From positions 1,396,389 to 1,460,388 of the forward strand of contig CM121343.1 of assembly GCA_051530055.1 (NCBI GenBank): DNA of 64,000 bases. The letters are read 5' to 3'. Below are positions 536 through 61,636 of the stretch, in pieces. A model generated the notes under the pieces. The model saw nothing but the letters and a program-made list of their open reading frames with translations, did not search any database and was not told where the DNA came from. The DNA comes from Neoechinorhynchus agilis. Its lineage: Eukaryota; Animalia; Acanthocephala. How positions within the stretch are numbered: position 1 is the first letter of the stretch; each line of letters starts with the position of its first letter. The translations under genes were made by a program, and so were the position numbers.

Positions 536-552
536 TGCTTCAAAAAGCCCAT

Positions 553-7125: not shown

Positions 7126-7239
7126 ATTTTCCGTGATTAAGGCGAACCAGTAATAATTCTGAAAGAATGTTAATTTTGATATAAATATCGATCCAATTAA
7201 ACTCAAATGACGTCGTCAGTTCTGGAACCTCAATCATTG

Positions 7240-12444: not shown

Positions 12445-12704
12445 ATTTCATCAATAAAGATTATGCGACAGTCTCGTGGGAATTCAATAAGAAGAGTTCG
12501 AAAAACATCCACACCACCGCTCTGGATCACTCGGTTGCCGTCCTGATGTAACGGTCGAACGGAAGGATGCAGCGCTTCCCCGGTGCACAGCCAGGCTTGT
12601 TATGTAGCATTGCTTTAGTTTCGATGTAATTTTGATTAGCTGGAATCCAACACTTTTATTGGTCTTCAGACCTATAAGTGAGGCGGTACCGGGTTATGTA
12701 ATTA

Positions 12705-12865
12705 GAATTATTGTTTAAAGTCTTCACACCGTAAATAATTTTTATTAAAGACGTTCTGTGAACTTCGGCGGGTTCATCATCAGTTTGTTTATTGCATTTT
12801 AATAATTAACAAACTAATGATAAATACGTCGAGCTTCTCTTTATCGGGTGAAGACTTCTAAACCT
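12705..12865. mobile_element. Hammerhead family A inverted pair (right arm eroded)
   Basis: GAATTATTGTTTAAAGTCTTCACACCGTAAATAATTTTTATTAAAGACGTTCTGTGAACTTCGGCGGGTTCATCATCAG followed by partial inverse AACAAACTAATGATAAAT...TTTATCGGGTGAAGAC. Confidence 0.65.
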
Positions 12866-13547
12866 ATAAGTATTGAGCTATTCTTCTTCTGTTTGATTGC
12901 AATGTTTCATTTCTATACAGTTAAGACCTACGTGGAGCCTTTTGCCAGTTAAAGATACTCTTCTTTATTTTAGGCGTGAATTTTCGTAATGTTGAGAAAT
13001 TTCTCGTCGACATTCACTGAGTAAAAATTTGATTTAAGAGCACATTACCATTCTTGTTAGGCCATCACAACACGATAGTTTGGAGCTGACGAAGCCCTAA
13101 ACTTATTTTCACTGTGTGTGTAAAATCATTTGTTCCGAAAGGATATCAATCGCATTTCGACAGATGATGTGAAGAGCAAATTTCTAATTACAAAGCAATC
13201 TCGCGGACAATTCTTGAAAGGAAATAGCTGTAGAGTCACTCTTTAAATTACTCACAAGGCAAAATCGTGACCGCGTAAAACTTCATCCAAAGTAATGCTC
13301 GATATTATGGGCGCTAGGAGTGGTTGACGCCTCTTATAAATAGTGTAACACTATGATTTGTTGACCGATAAAATTCCACCTTAACTTGTAAGTGGATTCT
13401 CATGTCACTGGAATCATTGTTTTCTTGTGTGTGTGCAATGTTGTTCCGTGCGATCCCTCGATTACCCATAAGATTTCTTTAAGGACAAAAAGTACAAGCG
13501 AAATCCGAGATAACGCTGCTCCGCTCAAAATCTACTTGGACAGCAAT

Positions 13548-16560
<3,013 letters not shown>

Positions 16561-32755: not shown

Positions 32756-34619
32756 GCGATGGATATAAGGATTACCCTAAAAACAAATCAAAAATCGATT
32801 CATTGAGATTTGCGATAGCTTGCTAGAATCTAACCCGAATTCAGTCATCGCGCCCCATTGTACATGCGCATACAATAACTCAGGATTTCTTGTTGCTTCG
32901 TATCTTATTGAAAAGACGAAAATGAAGCTGAGAAGTGCAATAACGGAATATCAGCGATATCGTGCCCCGGGAATTCAATCGCCCCCGTTTATTCACGGCT
33001 TGAGATTACGGTACTCAAGTTGGCGAACAGGAGTGTTATTGAAACGCAAAATAGATGTCAAAGATGTGACAATTACCGAGAACACGAAATGGCAGTGAGT
33101 ATTGAAACGAGAACAAATTACGGATCGAGGCAGAAAGCAAATGACGAAAGCTTGGAAACCGATATCATTGACATTGATAGAAAGAAGATCGCTGGTGGAC
33201 GAAAGCGTTGTATAGGTGATTCAGGCGAGCAAAGGATACCGTCAAAGAGACGAGTTTCACAATCGTCTACTTGCGACTCAACTAGTTAAAAGCGAGTCAA
33301 AAGACCTCAAATCCAGAAAGAGATCAAAGAATAATATATCCTCTTGTAAAAGATCGTCTCAAGTGGCACAAATAACGGAATCAACAAGCCAAGAACAGAG
33401 TCCATCTACAAAAAGGGTTGCAGTCAGCGCGGAGCAAGCAGTTTTCAGGCCACAAAGGAAAGTCGCTGAACTACCAACAAAAACAAACCCTTCAATTCTT
33501 GATAGTTCGCTTGAAGACGCAAGCCAACCAACAGGTCTGTCACAGGGCTTCTCGGTAGATGTTCCTTACATCTATCGACTGAGATACGACACCGACCAAA
33601 GAAAAATCGACGAAATTCAGCAAAACATTACAGAACTTTGTCCAGTTAATCATGGAGGAGGATTCATCGGTAGCCAGCAGGTATCAATGACAGTTAATAA
33701 TGTTGAAACATTGTGGCAATTAAGTTATCGAGAAAGCTACAAGGCCGACGGAACCCGGTACTTGCTTTTTATTCGAGAGTAAAACGAAATTTATATTATC
33801 GACAGGCGCAATTCAATCTTCAGAGTTACCAATCTTACGTTTGTGACGAACCGTGGCACCACAGATCATCTTCGTCAGACTTTGCTTGATTGAGAGATGG
33901 TGGAAAATATCGAGGTTGGTACACGGATTCCTCGATTCCTTATATTTTACGTCTTGGCATTCAACAGGCATTCTACAGGTAAGGAACTGAATTAGGAAAA
34001 ACGATCGGAACTCATTTGGAGGGAGATTATGCAGCCTCGTTATCGTGCTATTATCGAATACGGAACTATAGACCGAAGTCGAGAGCCTTTTCGGATTAAA
34101 AAGAAGGATTTTTACGACCTCATGTTCACTAAACAAATTTTTAATGGGATGTTTCAAAATGAGATAACCCATCAAGAAGACGGTCTTATATTTCAGCCCG
34201 TTGATATGTCGTATATTTTTGGTACCTTTGACAAGCTGCTAAAATATTAACCTCCACCATTCAATTCGGTCGATTTCAAATTGGTCATTCCTCGACACGT
34301 GATGGAAAAGCGAAAAATAGGATCTAGCGGGCTGCTGTATGTGAGAAATTACCAAGAGCCGTTTGTACGGATTCGACTCACGGATGAATTGTTTCGATGC
34401 TAAGAAAAGATAATTGAATGCGTTGTTGCCGGAGGTGAATGGAAGATGGTTCGGGTTAGAACTGATAATGACATCCCTAATGCTTTTCAAACTGCAATTC
34501 CGATCAAGGAAAGTATTGAAATATCCGTGGCGCAAGATTTACTTTTGAATACCATTGCAAAGGTCAACCGTAGATTGTTTTATATAAAGAGTTTAGAAGA
34601 CTACAACAAGATCGACTAG
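32756..34619 (+). pseudogene. RNGTT: mRNA capping enzyme (RNA triphosphatase + guanylyltransferase) pseudogene, copy A, 5'-truncated
   Basis: HCxxxYNxSGFLVASYLIEK (DSP), GFIGSQQVSM, KADGTRY (motif I, 33741), HQEDGLIFQP, PPPFNSVDFKL, KIIEC..W..VRVRTD..PNAF. In-frame stops in conserved motifs (LD*EM, KY*PP). Confidence 0.88.
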
Positions 34620-39429: not shown

Positions 39430-40430
39430 AAATGGTACAGCAGACTAGTAGAACACTGACGATGGCCACCCTGATGAGACATTTCAGGTACAAGAGATTA
39501 GCATTGGGAACATCCGCCGCCCGAATATTTTCCAGACGTATATTAACGGCGTGCTTAAATTACTTTATAGGCACGGAGACAAAGGAGGACATTTCATACT
39601 TGAAGAATGTGTACCATCGGTTGGAGATTTTTAGATGCCCTGCAACTCTAATTTTATTACAAAAGAGACATCCACGCTCGGACGAAAATACCGCCTTGCC
39701 CTTTAACTCAAAAACTCCGCCTGAAACGAATACTTTGATCTCTATTGATGAGATGAAACGGAGCGTTTCCTCCTTTTCTAACGGATCCGGGCATGGTTTA
39801 GGTGGTCTACGTCCTCAACAGCCGGAACTGGAGCTATCTCTCGAAAATTCACTGATCAAACTTATCGATCGATTCACAATGGGCGGTCTCAGTAAAGTTT
39901 GTCAGCAGCTCTTTTTCTCACCTTCCTTGCTTTATCAAAAAATGATGGAGGTGTTCGACCCATTGCAATAGGCTGTGCACTTCGTAGACTCGCAGCTAAA
40001 GTTCTATGTAAACGAATCACAGACAAGGTAGGCGTACAACTTCGACCTGCACAACTTGGTTGCTGTACCTCGTGTGGTACCGAGCCGATCGTTCATGCTC
40101 TTCGTAATTATATTGAAAATTCGACCTCGCCAAGTGTTGTGCTTAAACTCGACTTCAAAAACGCTTTCAACTCATTGAATCGATGTGCCCTCCTTAATAG
40201 TATAATCGAAAACGTACCGGAGATTTTCCCGTACTTTCAAACAGCTTACGGCTCAAAGAAGCTTCTAATATATGAGAATAATATAATATGGTCGGAGTCC
40301 GGAGTTCAGAAGGGAGACCCCCTGGGCCCCATCGGTTTCTCAGTCGCAGTTAATCACGTTGCTAAATCTTCCTCACCTACGGTTATCCCGTATTTTGCAA
40401 ACTTCAAAATCGCTAATCCGCCGTCTTGAA
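39430..40430 (+). mobile_element. Non-LTR retrotransposon RT fragment, restriction-like-endonuclease group (CRE/HERO/NeSL-like)
   Basis: SGHGLGGLRPQ, KNDGGVRPIAIGCALRRLAAK, QLGC, KLDFKNAFNSL, GVQKGDPLGP; frameshifted and truncated before YLDD. Confidence 0.8.
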
Positions 40431-40449
40431 ATTCTTCATAAAAGAGCAT

Positions 40450-41385
40450 ATAAATTTGAACAGCTAACTTCATAACGCCTCTCAGCCCTACCACCACAAT
40501 ATCTTCCACATATCGCACCCTTTTCACACGAGAACAACACTCGTAATCCTAATTCGTTTTTTCCTCTTTCGACTTCGCACCTCCCTATACTTACGCTCCT
40601 TTTCCATGCCGCCCAGTCTTCTCGGATATCATAACCTGAAATGAATCTGAGGAAAAACCAACCTTACAAGCGCTTCTGCGAACAATAACCACCAATTCCC
40701 ATCAGAACGGATCTTCCAACCCAACCGAACATTGCCGCCCGCCAGGACTCGTAATCCACTTTATAATCAATAGCCAGTTTCATTTTCCAATCAGAACTCG
40801 AGTGTTCATGAGGACCCAAAGGTACATGGGTTCTCTTCTTTGTGAATCAACAAATAAAACGTGTTATTATTAGGTTGAAGACATGACTGTCGGTATACGA
40901 AAAAATGAAGCATCGAAAAATGAAGGCGTTCAAAAAGAATGATTTTAACGCTAAACAAATTAATCATCGATGGAAAATCCTTCGGGTTAGTCAAAGTATA
41001 ATTTTGGTGAAAATACTCCCGGTAATAGCATATTTGATTTATTGGACATATTTCGCGAGGTGACCTCGCCTCATCAGTCATCTAAAAAATAATACATTTT
41101 TCACATTCAGGTTTTAAGCTCGAGCACGCAGAATCGCCATACCCGAAATTCGGGGCCAATTATCCGCTCAAACCCCCTGCGATGTACTACGTTCTTTCCA
41201 TGATTTTAGTATTGATTTTTAACACGTCGCTGGCTGGAAGTTTCAAGCCAAAAATAGCTTTATTTAATTCCATATTGTTTAACACAGCGATGTGTAAGGC
41301 CTCCAAAACAAGACTTCTTTTTAAGTTTTGCTCTATTTCTATAAAGTTGGTGCCACCAGAATCCGCTGGATCCTTACATGTCGCT
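40450..41385 (-). mobile_element. PLE family B 3' portion (GIY-YIG C-terminus, hammerhead, downstream tail)
   Basis: GGTNFIEIEQNLKRSLVLEALHIAV..KIMERT* is near-identical to the end of ORF 53633-54058; flanking DNA 40950-41330 matches 53930-54300 in inverse orientation. Confidence 0.75.
41041..41080 (-). ncRNA. Minimal type I hammerhead ribozyme motif (family B)
   Basis: Minus strand CTGATGA-G-GCGAGG-TCA-CCTCGC-GAAA-TAT-GTC followed by AATAAA; stem II perfect; stem I pairing not evident. Confidence 0.65.
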
Positions 41386-41389
41386 TGAT

Positions 41390-41528
41390 GATTGGAGATT
41401 ACCGACACACGAACCAAATGGTTTACTCCATTGTGAGTAAAAAGGCTGGAATTCGTCTATACAGTACTAAAGGAATCGCTCTCAGAATCACTTTCAAGAG
41501 GAAGGGTGAAATTGAGCCGACTCATGGG
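41390..41528 (+). mobile_element. PLE family B fragment in opposite orientation (pre-GIY-YIG linker)
   Basis: YSIVSKKAGIRLYSTKGIALRITFKRKGEIEPTHG matches 53630-53745; cut off just before the GIY motif by the LTR. Confidence 0.75.
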
Positions 41529-41696
41529 GATCAAATGGCTGACAAGAAGGTAACAAAGATGTGGTGACGATGCAACGCATGATTATTGATCGTGAGCGTT
41601 GACATTGTACTTGTGAGTGTGCAAGTGACGGGTGGTTGTTAGAAAATGGCTGGTTGTCACAAGAAGATTTTGATCATGGCTAACAAGGGAACGACA
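41528..41696 (+). repeat. Gypsy LTR, 5' copy (first few bases lost)
   Basis: 169 bp identical to 49556-49724; ends in CA and is followed 2 nt later by a PBS and gag. Confidence 0.8.
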
Positions 41697-41698
41697 AT

Positions 41699-41708
41699 TG
41701 GCGACGAG
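41699..41708 (+). promoter_or_regulatory. Primer binding site TGGCGACGAG
   Basis: Typical Gypsy PBS motif placed directly after the LTR end and before gag. Confidence 0.75.
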
Positions 41709-41714
41709 GGTTCG

Positions 41715-42315
41715 TTAATTCAAAGAATGATGGAAAGACAAGATGCTGTGATGGCTATGTTGTTGAAGCAGCAGGACGAGCAAGAAGCCAACGATAAAAG
41801 ATTGTGGGAAATGGTGTTTGAGAAGAAGGAAAACAATAAAGAGAGCAAATGACAAGTCAAGATCGCGCCCTTCAGAACTTTCAACCAGGAACAGGAGTCC
41901 TGGAAAACTACCTAGAGCAGTTAACACAACATTCCCTGCTCTCGGGGATAGAAGACGAGGAGCAGGAAAAGACATGCTTACTTGATTGGTTGGGCCCGAG
42001 GACATTTGGAATAATCAGGAAAGCGACTGGAGCGAGAAAGCCAGCCGAACTGAAATACAACGATTTAATGATGTTATTGAAAGAGATGATGGGAGAGCGA
42101 ATTCACGAAATCACATACAGGTATAAATTTTTCAATATGAAGATGAATGTGCAGCATTCGTACAGAGAATGGGTCACGGAACTGTGGGGGCTGCAAGATG
42201 TTGTGGTGTTGAACTGCCCTCACGAGGAGGTGTGGAAGATGGCATTACAACACAAGAATTTAAAACTAAAAAATTAACCGAAGCCATGGAAGTAATGAGA
42301 AGTCAGGAAAGGGAG
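41715..42315 (+). mobile_element. Gypsy gag, disrupted and 3'-truncated
   Basis: VKIAPFRTFNQEQESW / NYLEQL..LLDWLGPRTFGII..KPAELKY..EITYRYKFF; stop and frameshifts present; no zinc knuckle before the foreign insert. Confidence 0.7.
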
Positions 42316-42329
42316 GGGAGTTACACATC

Positions 42330-43889
42330 CTGCCGGTGGCAAACAATGTAGTTTCGGCCTTTGCCTACTCACCTGCTAACGACGCCGCCGAGACTGAAAT
42401 GTTAACTGCACTGGCAAATGGAGTGCGCTCTGGTGTTCTGGTCGTGGATAACGTAAAGTTCAGTCCCAATCAGTTGAATGTGTTGGCCTTGGCTGCGAAT
42501 GAGTTTCCGAGGTTTGCAGTAGCTGCTCCTGGCCACCCATCTTTGGCCCAAGCGGTGACTATTCCCGCAGTGCCTCTCGTCATTTTGTATCGCGGAGGGC
42601 AGGCTATCGTTCCTCCTGCAGTTCTCCCTCAGTTCAACGTTGTTAAAGAGACGATTGTGCGGTTGATGTCCCTCCGTCGTGAGTTCTCTGCTGCAATAAC
42701 TGGTTTTCATCGAGCGGCCTCAATTTTTGCTCGTTGGGGGCCGACCAGGCATCTCAGTCGGATAGGGGGATTTACCGGGACGCTCGAGGTTTCTGTGCTA
42801 GTGACCAAAGCCACATTTTGGAAATTCCTTCTTGCACTTATTAGGTTTAATCCGGGACGCGGCGGATGAGGACATCAAACTGGAGGCTTCCTTTATGGCG
42901 TCAGTGGACGCCTCGGATTGTTTTAGGCTGAGCCTATTTTCTTCTGCCATCGCTGTACTATCCATATCAACTGCTTTCGACCAATATTGTATAACGGCCC
43001 GTGGATTATGCTTCGGCGATATAGTAGAGACGGCAACAAATTATAACAGTATGAGGACCAAGATACAGCAACTATCAACAGTCTCAAGAGTCGCCCCTGC
43101 CTTGTGTCTCCTTTATCAGATGGCCATGCGTCTATCAACTGCAATAAAAATGCCGAGCCTTGGAATACACTTTTGGACTGGAACCGCGTGGGCAACTGAA
43201 TTCACAGCCATATCTGTAGAGAACAATGTCACCGATGCGATGTGGCACGGCGCTTTTGGCGCTTACGTCCCTTATCCGGTATCTCCACTCTCAATGCTAT
43301 GGTGCGTTAAGATTTATCCGGCACACTGGGCTTTCCCAGTCCTCCGACTTCAATTATGATTACAAAGGAAATCGTGCGTGCGGGCTTTCTGCGAGATGTA
43401 TTCTTCATGCCGTCCATAGGTGACGAGATTTTCAATTCTGGCGGCGTGATTGCGAGCGGCAGGCATAGTACTTCTCACTATGTAAAACTCCTGCTCAATG
43501 TCATAGCGCAAACTGCCCGTTACGTTTTTGCGCCTACCAATGAGTGGATTGCCCGCGATCCAGACATGATCAGTCACGAGCGGTCCATACCCGGTGATCG
43601 ACCGTTGCCTGCCATGCAATGGGATGAAGAACTGATGATTATAGTTCCTGGAACGCTTTGTGCCTTCTCATGGGAGATGTCTAGCTTCGCCTCGCCAATA
43701 TGGCGCCTAGGCGACCTACACGCTGAAATCTCTAGAGTGATCCTCCGGAAAGATTGTCTACAGCACCCGGCAGTGGGCATAGAGTGCGATAGAGGCAGCA
43801 TCTATACCCCTGGTGCTTTCGACATCTTAGGCCTACATGACGTGGAAGGTGAAGCCGGGACTTTGCCAGTGGATGATTTCAAGTTTTAG
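42330..43889 (+). other. Endogenous viral element: putative toti-like dsRNA virus capsid gene (partial, two compensating frameshifts)
   Basis: Three consecutive stop-free ORFs (42336-42869, 42832-43359, 43356-43889; frames 0/+1/0) totalling ~515 codons. No retroelement motif; GC-richer than the flanks; lies directly upstream of a frameshift signal and an RdRp-like ORF. Capsid identity is inferred mainly from position. Confidence 0.55.
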
Positions 43890-43930
43890 AGGGGGCTAGT
43901 GGGTGTGTTACAAGCCCTCTTAAGGGCCAC
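43874..43930 (+). promoter_or_regulatory. Putative -1 programmed ribosomal frameshift cassette
   Basis: T-GAT-TTC in the capsid frame (one change from G-GAU-UUC), 8-nt spacer, 9-bp stem 43889-43897:43913-43921, loop GTGG able to pair with CCAC at 43927-43930. Confidence 0.55.
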
Positions 43931-45097
43931 GTTGTGAGATAGAAAATTAAAACTTCTCTCATTGCGCTTGAAACCCTAGTGAGTGGGTATGTTCAGGCTA
44001 CCTTGAAGAACCAAAAAACCAGGGCATTGTGTTCCTCTACTTACCCCTTCCCCTCTGCATTTTTAGATATTGATGGTACTCGACTTTTCGCCAGATAAAA
44101 TGCAACAGCTATGGGCAGCAGCGAAGGTTGACCCTAAAGACGCCAGGGCTCGCGTCTCAATGTTATTGGACGAAGGGCCACTTTTGGCGACTACATCAGT
44201 ACACGCTTCGACTAGACTAGGTTCATCAATAGCTCGTCTCCACACTTTGGCTGAAGTAGAGGATGCTACTCGAAATACGGAGAGATTAGGCTATCTCCTG
44301 TCTATGGATACGTACAATGTGGCTTCTGTCGGACTCAACAACGAGCGGGATAGACAGAGATTGCTCGATGCAATGTCGGGGCTCTGTTTTTCGAATGACT
44401 CTCCAGTGGCCTTCGCACTATGGCAACAAGTTTTACCCGATTCTAGGGCACTCAGTTCCTTGGTTCGAGAGGACCTAACTGCTTTGGAGGCTTCTGCTAC
44501 TTTGAAAGTTCCTTTAGGCGCGATGTTGAAAATTGGGCGATACCCTTTTCATAGGTGTCCACACCTCACAATCTCAAGATGGGCCACTTCCAGGAAGGGC
44601 TACGATGGAGTCAACACCCTATTTCCTGCGGCAACGAAGGCTGATTGGGCTGCAACCAAACTAGACGCCCAAACTACCCTAATGCTCATATCTCAAGCCG
44701 CTCGTAAGCACAAGAACCGTTGGATTACACGAATCAATGACCTATTTCGCGTTATGCGCGTCGGAAACTTCAATTCCACCGCGGCCGGACTTTTGCTTGC
44801 AGTAGTTTCTAGCGAAGAGATGTCCCAGTGGGTGAACGTATTGAGCTCAAAAGGTCACTGCTGCCTACCTTCTGGAGACCTACTCACTCAGTTGAAGAAG
44901 TTAAGTGATGCTGCCCTCCGATCAGGGCGTTGTTGGCGAGGGCACCAACTATCTGCACCGGCACTGGCTAAGTTTGCTTATTGGCATCTATGTTCCTCGC
45001 GTGCTTTGAGCACCTCTGCTTGGGATAAGGAAAGAATGAACAGGACCACCCCCGTAGAACTGTCACCCGTCTTAGGTTTTGACATAGTCGCAGCGAT
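43890..45097 (+). other. Endogenous viral element: N-terminal part of a toti-like RNA-dependent RNA polymerase
   Basis: 349-aa ORF 44070-45119 with LKKLSDAALRSG and FAYWHLCSSRALSTSAWDKERMNRT, resembling the Totiviridae pre-motif pattern L..L..R.....W..E...R. Cut before the catalytic motifs; its last codons run into Gypsy protease DNA. Confidence 0.68.
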
Positions 45098-45099
45098 TC

Positions 45100-47150
45100 A
45101 AAATTCATCCAATGGGTAGATGTCTAGTATGGGTATCTAAAACAGGACAAAGGAAACAACTGCCAGTTATTGTGGCCAAGAGAAGGGAAAGCCCATTATT
45201 CGGTTTGGATTGGATCAGAGGATTCGGTTTAAAAATCCCAGCGGAGATAAGAAATAAAGAGGGGTTTAGTTGTGTGAAAGAAATAACATGGGAGGAAAAT
45301 CGAAGAACAATTTCCAAAGGTGTTTGATGAAATGGTGGACAAAGTGAAGAATTTCAAAGCACAGCTGATCGTGGAAAAGAATGCCAAACCAATAGGCCCG
45401 CTCGACGGATTCCGTTACCGTTATTGAACAAAGTCAAAAAGGAAATATTCCGCCTGAAGGAGAGGAGGCGATCGAATGGATTACACCCATGGTAGTAGTA
45501 AAAAAAGCTAATGATCAAATTAGGATTTGCGGTAATTTCAGAGTGACGATTAATCCGTTCTTGATTATGGAAACATATCATATGCCGACCATCGAGCAGT
45601 TATTCCAAAAACGTGGCTGAAGGTTGCAAATATTCTATTATTGATTTGAAGGACGAATATTTGCAACTCGGGGTGGAAGAACGGAGCAGTCAGCTGTTAA
45701 CAACGAGTACACCGTGGGGTTTGTTCTGATATGCCAGGATGCCATTTGGTATAGCAGCCGCACCAATAATCTTTCAAAAATTCATGGACAACCCTATTGG
45801 CGACACCCCCGGCGTGTCGGTGTATTTAGGCAATATATTTGTGACTGGAGCAAACATGGAGGAACATTGGGCGCACGTACAGGAGGTTTTCAGGAGATTT
45901 GAGGACGTTGGATTAAAGGTGTCCAGATCAAAATGCAAGCTGATGCGTGAGGTGTGTTTCTTGAGGATGCGCATTCACGAAAATCGAATTCAACCGATTG
46001 AGAGCAAGACGACAGCAGTGTTGAACGCTACCATTCCAACTAATATAAAAGAGTTACGATCCTTTTTGGAACTTGCCGATTTCCATGCTCCATTTATTCC
46101 AGGACTGCAAATGTTGTGCGTACCGCTGTATGAATTGACGAGTGTGAAAAGAAGATGGAACTGGACAAGCAGACATCAAGCAGCGTTTGAGCAAGTAAAA
46201 CGAGCCTTAGGAAGTCCGGAGAGACTAATTTCTAACCAAGTGGAGTTGCCAGTGGTTGTGATGTGCGATGCGAGTCAGAAGGGAGTTGGTGTGTGATCTG
46301 TCATATTGTCGAACGAGGACAAAATATTCCGATTGCGTGTACGTCTCGAGTCTTGGCCGATGCCGAAAAGAGATACTCACAAATCGAGAATAAGGATTTT
46401 GCAATTGTGTTCGCCGTAAGGAAATTCCATGTATTTTTACAAGGTAGGAAGTTCATTTTGCAGACCGATCATAGACCATTAAAATATATGCTTGGAACCG
46501 AGCGAAACTTGTCCAAAATAGCTAATACTCGCCTGATGAGATGATCCTTGATTCTATTGGAATATCAATATGTGGTGGTGCATATTAAAGGAAGAAAAAC
46601 GTTATGGCAGATGCACTATCAAGGATGCCATAGAGGGACAATAGAAATAAAAGTGTCACATGATGAAAATGTGGATCATTTTGAACTATCGGACGAGTAC
46701 TAAGGTCTGAATCGCGATGCGATTCACAAATAAATACAATAATGAGATACGTGTTGAGAGGCTGGCCGGACAGACAACAACAGGAGGATCAAGCGTTCTG
46801 GGTAAGATGAATTAGCCGTGGAAAGAGGGGTCCTGCTTTGGTTGAACCGGATCGTGGTACCGGAACGTCCGCGAGCACATTTCTTAGAAATTTTGCATCA
46901 TGGTCCTCCGGGCGAGTCCGTGATGAAGAACATTGCAAGATTCCATTGTTATTTGCCGGGAATAGACAAGGAGGTAGAACATTATGTCAAACGATGCAGT
47001 GACTGCCAACGTTTGCGACCAAGACAAGTATCGGCGCCATTAATTCCTTGGGATGTACCAAAAGGGCCATAGAAAAGATTGCACATTGATATTGCGGGAC
47101 CGTTCGGAGGGTCCCGTATTTGGTAATGGTCGACGCATGTTCCAAATGAC
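45100..47150 (+). mobile_element. Gypsy pol remnant (protease C-half, RT, RNase H, integrase N-part)
   Basis: PLFGLDWI, VVVKKANDQIRICG.F, MPFGIAAAPIIFQKFM, YLGNIFVTG, DASQKG, YSQIENKDFAIVF, QTDHRPL, H...G....K..AR, C..C; many stops and frameshifts. Confidence 0.92.
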
Positions 47151-47719
47151 CCGAAGTTTGGAGGGAAACACGAGTATTTCATTTGATAAACATGGCTCAT
47201 TCATAGTGTATAAGATAGACATGATGCTGATCAGTGCTAATGGAGATCCTTTAAAAACATGAAAAATAATATGAAAACTTTACGGAGATTACGTCTTGAC
47301 AACGAATCTGTCTAAGAAACTAATCATTCGAACTAATATCCAAATGGAAAATTCGATAATTGTGTGCTCTAATTTTAATGAAAGTAAAAATTGAATCGAA
47401 GAATAAAATTGATGGGAGTAATAAGTCCATTCTGGATTCAAAGCGATATTACCATTTTCTACATCCATTATTCCATGATTGACAATATAAGAACAGGGAT
47501 AGAGAAATATCATTTTTTGTAAGTCATAATCATACATTTTCTTGGCATATTAATATGATCAGTTATTATATAAATAAAAACATCTTATTTGCACGATATT
47601 CACCAATAAAGTCTTAATGGTGATGCTCCTGACATGTACAATTATTTTATCATAGGAGTGCAAAACTTTCAGAACTTGTAAATAAATCAAAACTCCACAA
47701 ACTCACAATAATATTAAAG

Positions 47720-49555: not shown

Positions 49556-49724
49556 GGATCAAATGGCTGACAAGAAGGTAACAAAGATGTGGTGACGATG
49601 CAACGCATGATTATTGATCGTGAGCGTTGACATTGTACTTGTGAGTGTGCAAGTGACGGGTGGTTGTTAGAAAATGGCTGGTTGTCACAAGAAGATTTTG
49701 ATCATGGCTAACAAGGGAACGACA
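49556..49724 (+). repeat. Gypsy LTR, 3' copy
   Basis: Identical to 41528-41696; preceded by purine-rich AAGGAGAACAATAAAAA (possible PPT) and CGTTACAT. Confidence 0.8.
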
Positions 49725-50339
49725 ATACCAACCGCGCGTCTCGAAGCACCGTAGAATTTACATCCAAGGTTGTAAAATTGTTGGTCGCAAGAACAAAGAA
49801 TTCCCATATAACCTATTAGAGGCGGATGAGTAAGCGTCGATATTGGTGAACACTTTGTTGTAGTGAGCGTCAAGACGAGTTGGAAAGTCTCGGATGTAGG
49901 AGAACAGAATATAAAATACTCACCGGTATTAATGTGTTGTAATTTTAGAAGTCTAAAATTAAGAATTGTTTTCTCGTGGCAAAATCATTTGACAAGTAAA
50001 ACTCTCCACGTGCTAGTTAGGTTTATGGACAAGGACCCGGCGGAACTATTAGCGAGATACTACTTATATCCCGGGTTGTTGGAAAGGGAAGGTGAGGGAG
50101 AGTTCTGGACATCTGCTCAACCGACGGGACGAACTATAAACTTCGATGTCGGTACTTTAACACACTTCAAAACCCTACTCGTCTTTGCACGAAGACTATT
50201 TAGCCATTCTAAAATTCTATTTTCTTATAACAACAATACTGTCAACTGAATCCTAGGGGCCAATTGTTGTTGATTTGGTGTTCAATGCAGGCTCTTTAAG
50301 CACTATTGCTGATTGACTGGGGAGAATGGTGATCGTAGG

Positions 50340-53054: not shown

Positions 53055-54300
53055 TGAAATCTATTAGCTCCGACCTTGGCCGACATCCACATGCGCGATT
53101 GGGAATCCACTTTCTTGGTGCTTCATAGTCATGTCAATCGGTGGTGGCGTTATGTGAACGATGTATTCATTTTGACTGATTCAAACAATAACAGAGATTT
53201 ACTAAATGCTGAACTGAACTGTCAAGATCCACACATACAGTGGTCAGTCAAAGAAGAGAGTATCAACGGTGAGGTCTCTTTCCTGGACGTCCTGGTCAAG
53301 CGGTCTGCACAAGGCAAAGTTAGCACGTCACTTTATCGTAAGGATAATCTACCATGGGGACCACGATACTGGTCAAGTCACCAACCGATGAGGTATCAAA
53401 TCTAGGCTGTCATGTCCTATTTCCAAAGAGCTTTTCTTATTTCCTCTACTCGATTTGCATGGAGTAAGGAAAGGGAGAGGATAGTACAGGAGCTGAAAAT
53501 GAGGGGATATCCCAAAATGATTATGGACCGGGGAATCCGAGGCTATAACTATCATCCGCATAACAACAAAAAAATCGTCTCCAAAGCCTGCATGCTTCGA
53601 AATAGTGCACTGGTGATGATGACACGAATCAAATGATTTACTCCATTATGAGTAAGAAGGCTGGAATTCGTATTTACAACACTAAAGGAATCGTTCTCAG
53701 AAGCACATTCAAGAGGAAGGGTAGAATTGAGCCGACTCATGGGATATATAGAATTCATTGTGAACAGTGCGAGAAAGTATATATCGGACAAACGATGCAA
53801 GGCATCGAGAAGAGGGTCGCTCAACATAAGCAAGCCTGCAGTCGATTTGAGCATTCGTCGGCAATTTCGGATCATCAAGCGGATTTTGGTGGCATCAACT
53901 TCATTGAAATAGAGAAAAACTTGAAAAGGCGTCTTGTTTTGGAGGCCTTGCACATCGCTGTGTCCAACACAATGGAAGGAAATAAAGCTAATTTTAGCTT
54001 GAAACTGCCAGTCAGCGACGTGTTAAAAATCAATACTAAAATCATGGAAAGAACGTAGTACATCGCAGAGGGTTCGAGCGGATAATTTGGCCCCGAACTT
54101 TGGGTTTGGCGATCCCGCGCACTCGAGCTCAAAATCTGAATAAGAAAAACATATTATTTTTTAGATGACTGATGAGGCGAGGACACCTCGCGAAATTTTT
54201 CCAATAAATCAAAATCAAATGTGCTATTACCAGGATTATTATCACCAAAATAATACTTTGACTAACCCGAAGGATTTTTTATCGATGATTGACGTATATC
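53055..54300 (+). mobile_element. Penelope-like element family B: RT C-half, GIY-YIG endonuclease, pLTR
   Basis: LAPTLADIHM..WE, WWRYVNDVF, SFLDVLV, LYRK, HGIYRIHCEQCEKVYIGQT..RVAQH..SAISDH, LEALHI; a few stops and frameshifts. Confidence 0.9.
54165..54205 (+). ncRNA. Minimal type I hammerhead ribozyme motif (family B)
   Basis: CTGATGA (54169-54175)-G-GCGAGG-ACA-CCTCGC-GAAA-TTTTTC then CAATAAA; stem I pairing not evident. Confidence 0.62.
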
Positions 54301-54791: not shown

Positions 54792-56665
54792 ATTTCTCAC
54801 ATACAGCAGCCCGCTAGATCCTATTTTTCGCTTTTCCATCACGTGTCGAGGAATGACCAATTTGAAATCGACCGAATTGAATGGTGGAGGTTAATATTTT
54901 AGCAGCTTGTCAAAGGTACCAAAAATATACGACATATCAACGGGCTGAAATATAAGACCGTCTTCTTGATGGGTTATCTCATTTTGAAACATCCCATTAA
55001 AAATTTGTTTAGTGAACATGAGGTCGTAAAAATCCTTCTTTTTAATCCGAAAAGGCTCTCGACTTCGGTCTATAGTTCCGTATTCGATAATAGCACGATA
55101 ACGAGGCTGCATAATCTCCCTCCAAATGAATTCCGATCGTTTTTCCTAATTCAGTTCCTTACCTGTAGAATGCCCGTTGAATGCCAAGACGTAAAATATA
55201 AGGAATCGAGGAATCCGTGTACCAACCTCGATATTTTCCACCATCTCTCAATCAAGCAAAGTCTGACGAAGATGATCTGTGGTGCCACGGTTCGTCACAA
55301 ACGTAAGATTGGTAACTCTGAAGATTGAATTGCGCCTGTCGATCATATAAATTCGTTTTACTCTCGAATGAAAAGCAAGTACCGGGTTCCGCCGGCCTTG
55401 CAGCTTTCTCGATAACTTAATTGCCACAACGTTTCAATATTATTAACTGTCATTGATACCTGCTGGCTACCGATGAATCCTCCTCCATGACTAACTGGAC
55501 AAAGTTCTGTAATATTTTGCTGAATTTCGTCGATTTTTCTTTGGTCGGTGTCGTATCTCAGTCGATAGATGTAAGGAACATCTACCGAGAAGCCCTGTGA
55601 CAGACCTGTTGGTTGGCTTGCGTCTTCAAGCGAACAATCAAGAATTGAAGGGTTTGTTTTTGTTGGTAGTTCAACGACTTTCCTTTGTGGCCCGAAAACT
55701 GCTTGCTCCGCGCTGACTGCAATCCTTTTTGTAGATGGACTCTGTTCCTGGCTTGTTGATTCCGTTATTTGTGCCACTTGAGACGATCTTTTACAAGAGG
55801 ATATATTATCCTTTGATCTCTTTCTGGATTTGAGGTCTTTTGACTCGCTTTTAACTAGTTGAGTCGCAAGTAGACGATTGTGAAACTCGTCTCCTTGACG
55901 GTATCCTTTGCTCGCCTGAATCACTTATACAACGCTTTCGTCCACCAGCGATCTTCTTTCTATTAATGTCAATGATATCGGTTTCCAAGTTTTCGTCATT
56001 TGCTTTCTGCCTCGATCCGTAATTTGTTCTCGTTTCAATACTCACTGCCATTTCGTGTTCTCGGTAATTGTCACATCTTTGACATCTATTTTGCGTTTCA
56101 ATAACACTCCTGTTCGCCAACTTGAGTACCGTAATCTCAAGCCGTGAATAAACGGGGGCGATTGAATTCCCGGGGCACGATATCGCTGATATTCCGTTAT
56201 TGCACTTCTCAGCTTCATTTTCGTCTTTTCAATAAGATACGAAGCAACAAGAAATCCTGATTCGTTGTATCCGCGTGTACAATGAACCGCGATGACTGAA
56301 TTCGGGTTAGATTCTAGCAAGCTATCGCAAATCTCAATGAATCGATTTTTGATTTCTTTTTTAGGGTAATCCTTATATCCATCGCAGGGCAGACAAAAGT
56401 GCGGTACATTTAAATAATCAGTAAACTCTTTATTGTCATAATATGGATCGTTATTTATAAGACTGATGATCCCGGCAATAGATCGATGTCCGGCAATTCG
56501 GCGCATCCGATTAACAGCAATGGTAGGCGTGAATCACTTGTCCTCAGGAATGAGCGAATCGTATTGTGACGATAAGGGAGTCTTAAATACGATAAAGCGG
56601 TTTTTAATGAGATACGAACCCATCGACGTGGTATTTAGCCACCGTTTAGGAATTCGCAGAATTGA
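54792..56665 (-). pseudogene. RNGTT: mRNA capping enzyme pseudogene, copy B, 3'-truncated
   Basis: Retains the N-terminus (LRIPKRWLN..RFIVFKTPLSSQYDSLIPEDK*FTP) and VHCTRGYNESG. Region 54792-56385 is the inverse near-copy of 32756-34349 with the same stops; motif I reads KAGG. Confidence 0.88.
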
Positions 56666-58560: not shown

Positions 58561-58769
58561 CTCTAGGAGCCTCTGACAAATCGTATCAGAAAATATCCCA
58601 GAAATAAACGAATTTCTCATGAAGTCTGCTTTTGCTTCGTTCGCGCTGACTGCTTTGAACTTACAATCCTTTGCCAGTGCAGCGAATCCTGTTCCTTAAG
58701 AGATGTCTTACGAGCTATCCGCTTCAATGTCACTGTAATGAGTCTCACTTCTCCACTTCACCATTGTAG

Positions 58770-58805
58770 ATCCCTGAAGAGGCCGTTAAACGGCGAAAGC
58801 TTGGA
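58770..58805 (+). ncRNA. Minimal type I hammerhead ribozyme motif (family C)
   Basis: TCC-CTGAAGA-G-GCCG-TTAAA-CGGC-GAAA-GCTT-GGA: stem I TCC/GGA, stem II GCCG/CGGC, palindromic AGCT stem III, AATAAA ~15 nt downstream. Confidence 0.7.
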
Positions 58806-58864
58806 AAAACAAAAGACTAATAAATCAGTGCGCCGATTGTCAAACAGAATTAATGGGAAAAAAG

Positions 58865-60110
58865 GCTCTCGCTTTACTAGAATACCAGTCGAAGATGCGA
58901 TCGAACTAGCTATTCCACCACTGATACAGAATTGCAATGACTGGAAGTTGTCAGTTAACAACTGGCGCAAAGTACTTCTTTTTTGCACAAAATTCTCGAA
59001 TTTTGAATTCGATGGGAAAAACTTCGATCAAGTGGATGGACTAGCAATGGGTAGCCCGATTTCCCCAGTTCTAGCTGAACTCTACATGAGGCACTGGGAA
59101 AGTTCGAGTTTGTCGAAGTTAACAGGGGTTAAACTCTGGATGCGATACGTGGATGACACCTTCATCATATTGGACCAAAAGAAGTGCACGGTCCCCCAAC
59201 TGAACAAAGAACTTAATGGGATGAACAAGCACATACAATGGACGTACGAACATAAAGAATGGGGTGCCTTACCATTCCTAGATGTCAACATTAAGGGGAA
59301 CTTGGATGGCACTTTCTCAGCTTCAGTGCACATTAAACAAGGTGTCCCACGTCAAGTCGTTCCTTGGATCTCTGATCAACCGCAAAAACACAAGATATCA
59401 AGGATTCGATCGCTATTTATCAGGGCATATCGATACTGCTCAGACGATGGTACCCTCAAGAACGAACTGGATCGACTATGGAATATCTTCAAAAGAGGTG
59501 GGTACCCAAAGAAATGCATCGAAAGAGCGAGGAAGGATGCAAGACTAATTAAAATAAAGAAATCAATGGCAACTGAGGAAAAAAGATACATTGAAGTCCC
59601 ATACATAAATGGAGATTGGAATTCAAAGATGGAATCTCTAATCAAACGACTTGACACAAAAAAGGAATACAAATTATATTGTAAAAAAGGGCGTACACTA
59701 AACAGTCTCTTACGACCCGAAAAAGAGGAAATGATCAATAAATGTGTATACAAAATCCCATGCCTAGACTGCGATCAATCTTATATCGGACAAACAAATA
59801 ATATCAAGAGACGATTGACCGAACATCGAAGAGCAGTCAGCAAAATGACGGATACGAACTCGGCAATAGTTCATCATATCATAGATAATGGACATAGGAT
59901 CAATTTTGAGAGGGCTGAAATCCTTGCGAGGAACGGAAACCGTAGGGACAGTACTACGATGGAGGCCATTTTTATTAAACAATTAAACACGTTCACGCAA
60001 CCTACGCGTTCCGCCTGATATATTCACGATGAAGCAAAGGATTCAACAGTGACCGTGTGAATGTATTTTAGATTCTGAAGAAGGCCAACGAGCAGGCCGA
60101 AAATTCAAAT
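58865..60110 (+). mobile_element. Penelope-like element, 5'-truncated, uninterrupted RT-C/GIY-YIG frame (within ORF 58738-60018)
   Basis: FTRIP, GLAMGSPISPVLAELYM, WMRYVDDTF, LPFLDV, CVYKIPCLDCDQSYIGQT..RRLTEH..SAIVHH...GH, MEAIFI. Confidence 0.93.
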
Positions 60111-60119: not shown

Positions 60120-61636
60120 ACAATCTTTCTTCGCCAAGTCCTACAAGGACTCTAAACCATCGGAGTTGATGGACAAGATGCAAGGCTATCTCGGGAAGCA
60201 CCCATCATGTTTCCTGTTCATTCAAATCTTCATAAGAAATTACCCGAGGATATTTGATCGGTCCTAGTACACGCCAAGATAAAGGATCCTCGAAAATTAG
60301 CACAAGCGGCCGACGAACTATGGAAGGCTATGCAGCTCACCACATCTTCAATACGGCGGAACCCAAGACAGCCATAATCACCCCCTTCGGTTTATTCGAG
60401 TTTTTAAGGATGCCTTTCGACCTCAAGAACGCTGCACAAACCTTCCAACGGCTGATAGACGCTGTCTGCTCCGGTCTCGACTTTGCCTTCGTCTACCTCG
60501 ACGATATTTTGATTGCAAGTCAAAACGAATCAGAAAATTTGCAGGATCTAAGAATTCTATTCACTCGTCTAGCAGAACGTGGACTTACTATCAACTTACC
60601 GAAATGCGAATTCGGAGTCAGAGCTCTAGATTTTCTTGGTCATCGAGTAAGTAAAGAAGGTACGATTCCCACACCGATCAAGGTAGAATCCATCCGAAAC
60701 TTTCCTCGCCCAAAAACGGTAAAGGCATTGCAGGAATTCGTGGGTATGATAAACTTCTATCATCACTTTATTCCTGCAGCATCGAAGTTATTGCGCCCAC
60801 TTTATCAAGCGATGTCAAAGAATCCTTCGAAGAAGATTTTTGAATGGACTGAGGAGATGAATGAGGCTTTTGAAAGCGCGAAGCAAGCACTAGCTGACGC
60901 CACAATGCTCACGCATCCGGCAAAAGATGCGCCAATAGCAATCACAACGGACGCTTCTGATTACGCTGTTGGAGCAGTCCTACAATAGAGGATTTCAGGA
61001 GATTGGAAGCTATTAGCCTTTTTCAGTCGTCAACTACGAAAGCCAGAGCAAAAGTACAGTACATTCGATTGAGAACTGCTGGCAATTTACTTGGCAATCG
61101 GGCACTTCCGCTATACAGTAGAGGGACGACCATAAACCGTTTTCACAGATCATCGGTCACTGATTTTTGCTATGGCCAAAGCTTCGGACCCTTGGTCCGC
61201 TCGACAACAAAGACATTTGAGCTACATCTCAGAATACACCACGAACATAGAGCATGCGAGTGGGCGCAGCAATCAAGTCGCCGATACGCTTTTGAGGGTT
61301 ATTCTAGCCAACGTTAACGAAGGTATCTCTTTTGAAGCAATGTCTCAAGATCAACAAGAAGATCCCGAAAAACAGGCACTACGGACAGCGAAATCAGCAC
61401 TGCGTCTCCGAGACGTTCCCATCGGTAACGAAGGATTAACGCTTCTCTGTGACGTTTCATCCGGAACACAAAGACTGATAGTACCAACATCGTGACGCAG
61501 ACGTGTATTCGACGCGATTCACGAGCTGGCACACCCCGGAATAAGAGCGACCCGCAAGCTAATCACAAGGAAATTCGCTTGATATTATATCGCAAAAGAT
61601 GTCGGCAATTGGGCTAAAACATGCATTACTTGCCAA
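60120..61636 (+). mobile_element. Gypsy element (CsRn1-like): gag fragment fused to RT C-half, RNase H, integrase start
   Basis: DSKPSELMDKM..CFLF, KTAIITPFGLFEFLRMPF.LKNAAQTFQRLID, VYLDDILIAS, TDASDYAVGAVLQ, DPWSARQQRHLSYISEYT, H.LAHPGIRAT, CITCQ; protease and RT N-half deleted. Confidence 0.92.

Follow-up and report, generated by a model that had tools for sequence, protein, structure and literature searches.

A toti-like virus fossil, probably within a decayed Ty3/Gypsy remnant, on a chromosome of the acanthocephalan Neoechinorhynchus agilis

Neoechinorhynchus agilis is a fish-parasitic thorny-headed worm (acanthocephalan). In the 64,000-nt stretch of its chromosome CM121343.1 (GCA_051530055.1) analysed here, hereafter the window, an insert of ~2.8 kb at positions 42321–45107 of the + strand lies amid sequence of retrotransposon character, and the question is what this insert is and how it came to lie there. 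A sequence-only reading had proposed that it is a fragment of a toti-like dsRNA virus that entered a Gypsy element by template switching. Our overall best explanation is likewise a toti-like fossil in a Gypsy remnant that arrived by template switching, and we put the probability of this reading at roughly 0.6. The insert and its immediate surroundings are laid out as follows (window coordinates).

41407..41527, + strand: fragment of a Penelope-like element, which abuts the 5′ end of the Gypsy-derived sequence (89% identity to window 53622–53743)
41528..42320, + strand: retroelement leader and putative gag-like remnant, which shares its strand and its purine richness with the downstream pol
42321..43889, + strand: toti-like ORF1 remnant (putative capsid gene), ~523 codons, from BLASTP to ORF1 relatives
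43890..44069, + strand: ORF1–ORF2 intergenic spacer of 180 nt, closed in all three frames
44070..45107, + strand: toti-like ORF2 remnant, the first ~346 codons of an RdRp gene, from phmmer (best E 5.2e-34)
45108..47260, + strand: Ty3/Gypsy pol remnant, with the presumed protease end, RT, RNase H, integrase zinc finger, and the start of the integrase core, from Pfam

The sequence at window 53622–53743, to which the Penelope-like fragment is similar, lies just ahead of a GIY-YIG domain (PF01541, 4.5e-6).

Extent and viral affinity of the insert

In terms of gene content, ORF2 provides the strongest similarity to viral proteins. The start of the gene is preserved, and the frame runs without frameshift or stop until truncation on the 3′ side cuts the gene off before the catalytic palm motifs; past the viral part, the frame stays open as far as a stop at 45119. 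A phmmer search of 1.84 billion proteins with the 349-aa ORF gave 51 matches at E ≤ 1e-3, most of which fall within the N-terminal ~350 residues of ~1000-aa proteins. The best match, P0003 (1040 aa), aligns over its residues 56–352 with ORF residues 57–340, and its residue 1 aligns to window position 44073; similarity to another relative, P0005, extends to ORF2 residue 346. The RdRP_4 domain (PF02123) was found in eight of nine scanned relatives, downstream of the matched part, with E values of 1e-34 to 1e-46; it occupies approximately residues 230–675 and ends at ~660–700. The named relatives include Totiviridae sp., Hubei toti-like virus 9, Hangzhou paraphaenocladius impensus totivirus 1, and Mute swan feces associated toti-like virus 2. 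These alignments show that toti-like RdRps are homologous to ORF2 in their N-terminal third.

These results agree with the sequence-only reading, which had assigned ORF 44070–45119 to an RdRp: its best phmmer matches are toti-like RdRps, with relatives that bear PF02123. The segment that had been singled out as the RdRp pre-motif region is inside the homologous region, before the catalytic core begins, and belongs to a block that a relative from Pomphorhynchus laevis also has. The further suggestion that the source virus is undescribed is supported: its nearest relatives are only ~30% identical.

The catalytic palm motifs themselves are absent, with similarity ending at approximately residue 340–352 of the relatives, and no further RdRp piece was found anywhere in the window by tblastn with all relatives. 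The motifs are missing because the RdRp gene is truncated, as expected of a fragment, and ORF2 itself has no Pfam match because it stops early in the PF02123 domain. No match was obtained for the four insert ORFs in Pfam, PHROGs, or PDB sequences, for the insert in the viral_contigs scanned, or for the 348-aa product in an exact look-up. A word-indexed protein search with the 349-aa ORF returned nothing, and the relatives surfaced only in the exhaustive phmmer search. The single-sequence AlphaFold model of ORF2 had a pLDDT of 34 and was unusable.

The ORF1 remnant is truncated at its 5′ end and contains two frameshifts and no in-frame stop. Two of its stretches align colinearly by BLASTP with the C-terminal 328 aa of the ORF1 of contig L002 (29%, E 5e-18, and 26%, E 2e-11); the ORF1 of contig L007 is also similar (29% identity, E 6e-12, BLASTP), and P0026, a capsid–RdRp fusion protein, matches both window genes in order. 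The arrangement seen in the window, namely ORF1 remnant, spacer, and RdRp start, recurs in L002 and L007, where the spacers are 211 and 137 nt long, and 147 nt separate the called genes of the P. laevis copy. A conserved element within the spacer was considered and rejected, as the spacer sequence does not align across relatives. With regard to the earlier assignment of the upstream ORFs to a capsid, their homology and colinearity with the ORF1 of two toti-like contigs stand, and the term "capsid" is applied by gene position only. ORF1 has no match in Pfam, and a profile of its relatives searched against PDB sequences yielded no meaningful match, the best hit being a designed protein (E 0.054).

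The edges of the insert are set by homology, to the second N. agilis copy described below (L001) at ~42321 and to P0005 at ~45107, so that the bounds given previously, 42330–45097, are slightly shifted. All four of the previously listed + strand open stretches, of 177, 175, 177, and 349 aa, are present. When the 2799-nt insert was shuffled 2000 times, the longest open stretch over all frames had a mean of 126 aa and a maximum of 244 aa, compared with the 350 aa observed, and at least one + strand stretch of ≥170 aa occurred in just 75 of the 2000, compared with four in the real insert. The description of the insert as nearly stop-free coding DNA is borne out by open stretches that are far longer and more numerous than in the shuffles. 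It is also richer in GC than its surroundings, as had been stated (0.50 versus 0.44 upstream and 0.43 downstream). On the sense strand, the purine content is 0.64 upstream and 0.575 downstream and the GC skew is +0.32 and +0.20, respectively; within the insert, these values are 0.47–0.49 and approximately zero. This purine-rich bias is common to both flanks and absent from the insert, in which no retroelement Pfam family matches, consistent with the earlier statement that retroelement motifs are lacking there.

The possibility that the insert is a native extra Gypsy ORF or a host gene was rejected, since both genes match a viral genome in order. By alignment, the insert is a colinear ~44% of a toti-like virus genome, made up of a 5′-truncated ORF1, the spacer, and the start of the RdRp gene; the copied stretch begins in mid-ORF1, takes in the intergenic spacer, and ends about one third of the way along the RdRp gene. 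Compared with its exogenous relatives, it is partial and disrupted, with both genes truncated and ORF1 twice frameshifted. We consider it nearly certain that window 42321–45107 is an endogenous viral element (EVE), in which one contiguous part of the plus strand of a toti-like dsRNA virus is preserved as DNA in sense orientation, and there is very little doubt in our minds that the source belonged to a Ghabrivirales-type lineage with a PF02123-bearing RdRp.

Related copies in worm genomes and in sequencing archives

A second copy of ORF1, L001, is located 0.9 Mb away on CM121343.1 and has different flanks; it spans only the 5′ junction of the window insert. The two copies are 80% identical in protein sequence and ~68–69% identical in nucleotide sequence, with their differences distributed 95/50/301 over the codon positions (pN 0.13, pS 0.85). 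Given saturated synonymous sites against 80% protein identity, together with the different ends, we read L001 as a separate integration, and on the same grounds the idea that the two copies are duplicates formed after integration was rejected. An ORF at the L001 locus with an RdRP_1 domain (PF00680, 1e-25; PF02123, only 0.018) was evaluated as the missing 3′ part of the RdRp and also rejected; it has no significant BLASTP similarity to the toti-like relatives (best E 0.035) and is separated from the ORF1 copy by Penelope-like and piggyBac fragments.

The genome of Pomphorhynchus laevis carries related toti-like fossils, represented by KAI0980754.1, together with identical copies, and by KAI0988074.1. 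Like the window copy, these reside in an acanthocephalan host, have the layout ORF1 end, spacer, and RdRp start, and fall into the same clade in a rough tree. Unlike the window copy, KAI0980754.1 is part of a tandem array with a 3666-nt period that sits beside LINE fragments rather than within a Gypsy element, and KAI0988074.1 retains the PF02123 core. The P. laevis fossils are not orthologous insertions because they are only ~28–29% identical to the window. Within the literature searched, viral traces reported for acanthocephalans comprise mononega-like fossils in P. laevis only, and P. laevis had, as of that report, no described exogenous virus (PMC12548735). No toti-like virus or fossil from the phylum Acanthocephala was found in the literature searched.

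These additional copies bear on whether the junctions could be artefactual, that is, whether chimeric DNA reads of viral or episomal origin were misjoined to a Gypsy copy. Pooled worms supplied the ONT R9.4 and Illumina reads, which were combined in a MaSuRCA hybrid assembly and scaffolded with Hi-C (PMC12690905), and a 1.6-kb inverted duplicate with 98% identity flanks the TE island, which hints at possible local assembly trouble. However, the libraries were made from DNA (PMC12690905), in which a dsRNA virus would not be present, and the insert is frameshifted and truncated at both ends. In addition, the window contains no N, and the insert is contiguous with chromosomal sequence, between TE and host-gene DNA, on a gap-free stretch of CM121343.1. 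The same chromosome carries a second, diverged copy with different flanks, and the independently assembled P. laevis genome contains related fossils. We therefore regard an artefact as highly improbable.

Outside the worm genomes, the closest relatives are three contigs of ~6.3–6.4 kb from the Logan assemblies of SRR6291331 and SRR6291373 (P0003, P0006, and P0004), with 30–33% identity to the window and E values of 5e-34 to 6e-29. The upstream layout was read for two of the three, the P0003 and P0006 contigs, and these share the ORF1–spacer–RdRp layout of the window, with an ORF1 that is homologous too. The two closest contigs, 6399 and 6285 nt in length, consist of ORF1, a spacer of 137–211 nt, and the RdRp. 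In contrast to the window, the genes are uninterrupted (728–848 and 1027–1040 aa), and the contigs have the appearance of complete exogenous genomes. Their run numbers belong to a series used for vertebrate virome libraries with parasite reads (PMC9241645).

Among toti-like viruses from invertebrates and environmental material with a PF02123-type RdRp, Hubei toti-like virus 9, Hangzhou paraphaenocladius impensus totivirus 1, and Totiviridae sp. QYV43092.1 have a homologous RdRp N-terminus (E 1e-6 to 1e-11) and the same ORF1-then-RdRp layout; they are only 20–27% identical to the window in the shared RdRp region, and a rough neighbour-joining tree without bootstrap places the window apart from them. 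Unlike these viruses, the window copy exists as DNA and has lost both ends and the catalytic core.

Gypsy flanks, junctions, and route of entry

Downstream of the insert, Pfam identifies RVT_1 (1.3e-16), RT_RNaseH (3e-20), RT_RNaseH_2, and Integrase_H2C2 (1.8e-7) in this order on the + strand, in two frames. This pol remnant is truncated at its 3′ end and broken by five or more frameshifts and five or more in-frame stops. Only a short stretch remains ahead of RT, and the catalytic part of the aspartic protease is missing, which fits the earlier account of a protease that resumes mid-domain. Upstream, the putative gag-like remnant is read in three frames, which implies at least two frameshifts, and ends before any zinc knuckle; the first 171 nt of the leader and gag-like remnant are 100% identical to window 49556–49726, inside other TE debris.

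The 142-aa gag-like ORF had no match in Pfam, PDB sequences, or the protein collection, and its AlphaFold model (pLDDT 47) retrieved nothing from the PDB with Foldseek at E ≤ 0.001; in our own judgement it is gag-like by position, composition, and general pattern only. The protease end and RT-start stretches have no Pfam match, and the gag and protease pieces gave no tblastn match at any comparison locus. Hence, the claim that the insert is wedged between gag and protease holds for the Gypsy pol downstream on the same strand; gag and protease were not confirmed by profile or sequence searches, nor gag by a fold search. The two flanks would be one colinear element as suggested by their order, strand, and composition only. 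Overall, the insert is quite probably embedded in, and co-oriented with, a decayed Ty3/Gypsy remnant that has no LTRs, with gag-like sequence on its 5′ side and the protease end, RT, RNase H, and integrase on its 3′ side.

Neither an LTR pair nor a TSD was found to bracket 41528–47260, and the sole repeat is the 171-nt leader patch. At the junctions of the insert, no direct or inverted word of ≥6 nt is shared within 40 nt of either one, which upholds the earlier statement that TSD and TIR are absent, and there is no A or T run of ≥6 near the 3′ junction. Both junctions lie in internal coding sequence and not at element ends. Because there is no TSD, TIR, or poly-A and the junctions are internal, ordinary transposon insertion and LINE-type retroposition are excluded, and neither retroposition of this type nor cut-and-paste insertion was retained as an explanation for the viral piece.

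Template switching before integration is plausible as the route, and we give it about an even chance. A retrotransposon reverse transcriptase would copy Gypsy RNA from its 3′ end, jump to the viral plus-strand RNA within the protease region, copy ~2.8 kb towards the viral 5′ end, and then return to the Gypsy RNA in gag. The chimeric cDNA would enter the germline, and the terminal parts of the Gypsy element would be lost later. A parallel is the LCMV–IAP recombinant cDNA that Geuking et al. (2009, cited in bioRxiv 10.1101/127498) reportedly observed experimentally in cultured mouse cells. As in the window, an RNA virus sequence is joined to internal retrotransposon sequence, in that case by copy-choice during reverse transcription; the LCMV–IAP event was reportedly seen experimentally, whereas the window presents the end product only, from which the mechanism is deduced.

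A second parallel is found in Aedes, where EVEs are enriched beside co-oriented Ty3/gypsy elements and template switching has been proposed (PMC5497376; bioRxiv 10.1101/127498). Like the window copy, the Aedes EVEs are viral fragments co-oriented with an LTR-retrotransposon in TE-rich DNA, and one integration is embedded within a full-length element (PMC5497376; bioRxiv 10.1101/127498). They differ in that they are mainly flavi-, rhabdo-, and chu-like and have been shown to produce piRNAs, whereas the window source is a toti-like dsRNA virus in an acanthocephalan and its host element has no remaining LTRs.

A less likely alternative is that a viral plus-strand cDNA, made by any cellular reverse transcriptase, was end-joined into a break in a resident, decayed Gypsy copy, with loss of the gag end and the protease start. 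Such capture is favoured by the disparity in decay, with at least 10 breaks in the 2.15 kb of Gypsy pol compared with two in 2.6 kb of viral coding sequence (binomial P ~0.008), which is compatible with the viral piece having arrived later or with a template that was defective from the start. A defective Gypsy RNA serving as the template would, however, account for the disparity under template switching as well. The repeat-free junctions and the lack of LTRs or a TSD around the Gypsy remnant are also consistent with end-joining, as is the surrounding 20 kb, a patchwork of abruptly joined TE fragments that includes the 171-nt patch repeated at 100%. Conversely, co-orientation with the Gypsy element would arise by chance in one of two cases under break capture but is expected under template switching, and in Aedes the association of EVEs with Gypsy elements is strongest in the same orientation (bioRxiv 10.1101/127498). 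The locus is a good descriptive case for RNA-virus sequence becoming DNA, with internal Gypsy flanks, co-orientation, and repeat-free junctions.

Present-day role and significance

Lacking the catalytic core, the insert is unable to make a polymerase. Most probably it is an inert fossil, and at most it would serve as a small-RNA template. It is also conceivable, though we think it unlikely, that the insert has been retained for a benefit it brings to the host, through antiviral piRNAs or through an expressed protein; this would fit either route of origin. The 349 codons of ORF2 are free of breaks and ORF1 contains just two, next to a shattered pol, but young age would explain this good preservation equally well. 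The BRAKER annotation of the assembly (PMC12690905) includes a gene that coincides with one ORF1 stretch, but the ORF1 frameshifts and the truncation of both genes speak against a protein function. As for piRNAs, the pathway is present in N. agilis, with PIWI genes, clustered piRNAs, and a ping-pong signature (PMC12256650). The orientable TE fragments around the insert are on the + strand, and the window copy sits in a largely one-stranded TE island. However, piRNA production needs no open frames, and the open frames are therefore no evidence for a piRNA role. In practical terms, the ORF1 stretch carries a "hypothetical host protein" annotation and should be flagged as viral-derived.

More speculatively, the window copy, L001, the P. 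laevis fossils, and the three Logan contigs may represent one acanthocephalan-infecting toti-like clade that is still circulating, hidden in fish or amphibian datasets, and that the worm genome has sampled repeatedly; the window copy could then feed a heritable, piRNA-based antiviral memory. We offer this only tentatively.

The viral fossil is of a known kind; what is new, per the literature searched, is its occurrence in the phylum Acanthocephala. A distinct toti-like lineage reached the germline in two or more acanthocephalan classes, and in N. agilis it did so at least twice; the fossils supply a concrete query for finding living viruses.

Extent and coding content of the insert

The plus strand is open over four stretches (177, 175, 177 and 349 aa) within the interval from about 42.3 to 45.1 kb, as the sequence-only reading had stated. 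In a control of 2000 shuffles of the 2799-nt insert, the maximum open length over all frames had a mean of 126 aa and reached 244 aa at most (observed, 350 aa); at least one plus-strand stretch of 170 aa or more arose in just 75 of 2000 shuffles, and the real insert has four. The segment lies in a window without any N and is bounded as follows.

41528–42320, plus strand: upstream flank, candidate gag-like sequence; GC 0.44, purine fraction 0.64, GC skew +0.32
42321–45107, plus strand: insert (ORF1 remnant, spacer and ORF2); GC 0.50, purine fraction 0.47–0.49, GC skew about 0
45108–47260, plus strand: downstream flank, Gypsy-type pol remnant, clear from its Pfam domains but badly decayed; GC 0.43, purine fraction 0.575, GC skew +0.20

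The insert is thus GC-richer than both flanks, and the Pfam search found no retroelement family within it, both as claimed. Direct or inverted repeats of 6 nt or more are absent from either junction, in agreement with the reported lack of a TSD or TIR, and no run of A or T occurs near the 3' junction.

The insert ORFs gave no match in Pfam, PHROGs, PDB sequences, a word-indexed protein collection or two IMG/VR scans. For the 349-aa ORF (ORF2), exhaustive comparison with 1.84 billion protein representatives in phmmer returned 51 matches at E ≤ 1e-3 (best four, 5.2e-34 to 5.8e-29), most of which are about 950–1100 aa long and align through their N-terminal 350 or so residues. PF02123 (RdRP_4) was detected in eight of the nine matches scanned, at approximately residues 230–700 (E 1e-34 to 1e-46), and the source names include “RNA-dependent RNA polymerase [Totiviridae sp.]”, Hubei toti-like virus 9, Mute swan feces associated toti-like virus 2 and Hangzhou paraphaenocladius impensus totivirus 1. 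This ORF, on which Pfam and PDB searches were silent, is homologous to the N-terminal part of toti-like RdRps. Residue 1 of the best match pairs with codon 2 of ORF2 and the similarity stops at about residue 346; as judged from this alignment, the start of the gene is therefore kept and its 3' part is cut before the catalytic palm. About 346 codons out of roughly 1030 remain, free of frameshifts and stops, and no additional RdRp piece was found elsewhere in the window. The segment that had been singled out as the RdRp pre-motif region falls within this N-terminal region, in a block common to a relative from Pomphorhynchus laevis.

The three closest relatives reside on Logan contigs of 6399, 6285 and 6403 nt. 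In two of these (L002 and L007) an ORF1 of 848 or 728 aa is followed by a spacer of 211 or 137 nt and then the RdRp; the window follows this arrangement, its spacer being 180 nt long and closed in all frames, and the spacer sequences of the window and its relatives do not align. The C-terminal third of both ORF1 products is colinear with the second and third open stretches of the window (third stretch, 29% identity to L002, E 5e-18, and 29% to L007, E 6e-12; second stretch, 26% to L002, E 2e-11). An alignment of five relatives contains invariant columns close to the ORF1 C-terminus, and both genes of the window find their counterparts, in the same order, in a 2473-aa fusion protein from a named totivirus. 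The proposal that the upstream ORFs encode capsid holds insofar as they are homologous to and colinear with a toti-like ORF1, but the label itself derives from gene position, a profile search of PDB sequences and a Pfam search having returned nothing; we refer to ORF1 as a putative capsid gene. Its remnant spans about 523 codons with two frameshifts and no in-frame stop, and relative to its relatives lacks roughly the first 200–300 codons. Together the ORF1 and ORF2 remnants represent about 44% of a genome of toti-like type, and the main interpretation of the segment as a toti-like fragment, with an RdRp start and the gene upstream of it, is supported by homology to viral genomes.

Related copies in acanthocephalan genomes

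The window maps to CM121343.1 (1,396,389–1,460,388) of Neoechinorhynchus agilis; one of its ORF1 stretches is a called gene in GCA_051530055.1, and a second ORF1 copy (locus L001) lies about 0.9 Mb away. The L001 copy reaches about 765 nt further 5', ends about 36 nt past the ORF1 stop and is bordered by wholly different sequence on either side. In an alignment of 484 codons the two are 80% identical in protein and 69% in nucleotide sequence, and differ at 95 first, 50 second and 301 third codon positions (pN 0.13; pS 0.85, which is saturated). The low pN and saturated pS indicate that purifying selection acted while the copies diverged, as it does in replicating viruses, and this argues against duplication within the genome. 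From these substitution patterns and the differing ends we read the copies as separate integrations of related viruses.

A repeat family with 75–78% identity between window 40371–40890 and L001 6260–7034, the tail of a LINE-like element, occurs 1.4–2.2 kb upstream of both copies and is probably just a common repeat. L001 also holds a separate viral fossil, a 354-aa ORF (12600–13664; CM121343.1, about 2.33 Mb) with a picorna/partiti-type RdRp core (PF00680, 1.1e-25) and no relationship to the toti-like RdRps (best BLASTP E 0.035). The second ORF1 copy is 1.9 kb upstream of this fossil, and the intervening DNA holds Penelope-like and piggyBac fragments.

Related toti-like fossils are carried by P. 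laevis, which belongs to another acanthocephalan class. One is a tandem array of identical units with a 3666-nt period (WNNJ02002973.1, 46–70 kb), and another keeps the PF02123 core. Each array unit contains, in order, a 412-aa RdRp start, the N-terminal part of ORF1, a fragment of LINE RT, the end of ORF1 and a spacer; the RdRp-start ORFs do not differ between units, which points to recent amplification or to gene conversion. A rough neighbour-joining tree, built without bootstrap, separates arthropod-associated toti-like viruses from a group made up of window ORF2, the P. laevis fossils and the three Logan contigs. The runs behind the contigs (SRR6291331 and SRR6291373) fall within an accession series from virome libraries of vertebrates that also yielded parasite reads (PMC9241645), and the contigs might be viruses of acanthocephalans. 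For P. laevis, mononega-like fossils have been reported and no other virus described (PMC12548735); our literature search found no mention of toti-like elements in Acanthocephala.

Retroelement context and origin of the insert

The description of the insert as wedged in a Gypsy element, between a truncated gag and a protease resuming mid-domain, stands in part: RVT_1, RT_RNaseH, RT_RNaseH_2 and Integrase_H2C2 match just downstream on the same strand, but no tool confirmed the “gag” and “protease” labels. The upstream flank has a purine bias like that of pol, and its 142-aa ORF is gag-like by our judgement; this ORF matched nothing in Pfam, PDB sequences or the protein collection, its AlphaFold model has a pLDDT of 47, and Foldseek returned no match. 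The presumed protease end likewise has no Pfam match. Frameshifts (at least five) and in-frame stops (at least five) interrupt the pol remnant, which is truncated early in the integrase core. The Gypsy remnant lacks a bounding LTR pair or TSD, its 5' end adjoins a Penelope-like fragment, and no other copies of this Gypsy family were found among the sequences examined.

The insert sits within a TE island of about 20 kb in which the fragments that could be oriented face the same way. A 171-nt patch of retroelement leader and first gag-like codons (41528–41698) recurs 8 kb downstream with 100% identity (49556–49726), amid decayed surroundings; the second copy adjoins an integrase fragment of a different Gypsy, and both begin at the same base. 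The island is bracketed by a 1.6-kb inverted duplicate (32756–34349 and 54792–56385, 98% identity), each arm of which has part of an mRNA-capping-enzyme gene (PF01331 in one; DSPc beside the other). Either a genuine palindromic duplication or, in this hybrid assembly from pooled worms, an uncollapsed haplotype or misassembly could account for it (PMC12690905). The window further contains Penelope-like elements with RT and GIY-YIG (53076–54058 and 58738–60018), another LTR-element RT/RNase H ORF (60254–60988) and, unrelated to the insert, a long array of internal repeats (542–7127) with many self-matches at 72–85% identity.

Both junctions appear to interrupt coding sequence inside the retroelement, and the viral piece reads in the sense direction. 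Together with the lack of a TSD, TIR or poly-A, this arrangement excludes ordinary transposon insertion, LINE-type retroposition and the landing of a Gypsy in an older viral fossil. Copy-choice during reverse transcription is a plausible but unproven route, to which we assign a probability of about 0.5. Reverse transcriptase would start at the 3' end of the Gypsy RNA, switch within the protease region to the plus-strand RNA of the virus, copy about 2.8 kb and return to the Gypsy RNA in gag, a course that predicts co-orientation of the viral piece and the Gypsy. A similar route was proposed for mosquito integrations adjoining co-oriented Ty3/gypsy elements (PMC5497376; bioRxiv 10.1101/127498).

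Decay is unequal across the locus: the 2.15 kb of pol contain at least 10 breaks and the 2.6 kb of viral coding sequence contain 2 (binomial P about 0.008). This favours either a defective Gypsy RNA as the copy-choice template or the more doubtful alternative that viral cDNA was ligated, with deletion, into a break of a Gypsy copy that was already in place and decayed. Some of the frameshifts in both sequences could be indel errors from ONT sequencing, since the assembly combines ONT R9.4 and Illumina reads (PMC12690905). That the whole insert is an assembly artefact is very unlikely, given that the sequencing libraries were DNA, that the viral copy is truncated and frameshifted and that independent relatives are present in two genomes.

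Present role and significance

Without the polymerase core, the locus is incapable of viral activity. PIWI genes, clustered piRNAs and a ping-pong signature are known in N. agilis (PMC12256650) and, with the same-facing TE island, make it possible that the insert serves as a small-RNA template. Toti-like fossils and virus–Gypsy chimeras are both already known kinds; the insert adds a phylum for which the literature search found no toti-like virus or fossil, and it is accompanied by evidence for repeated integration of toti-like viruses.
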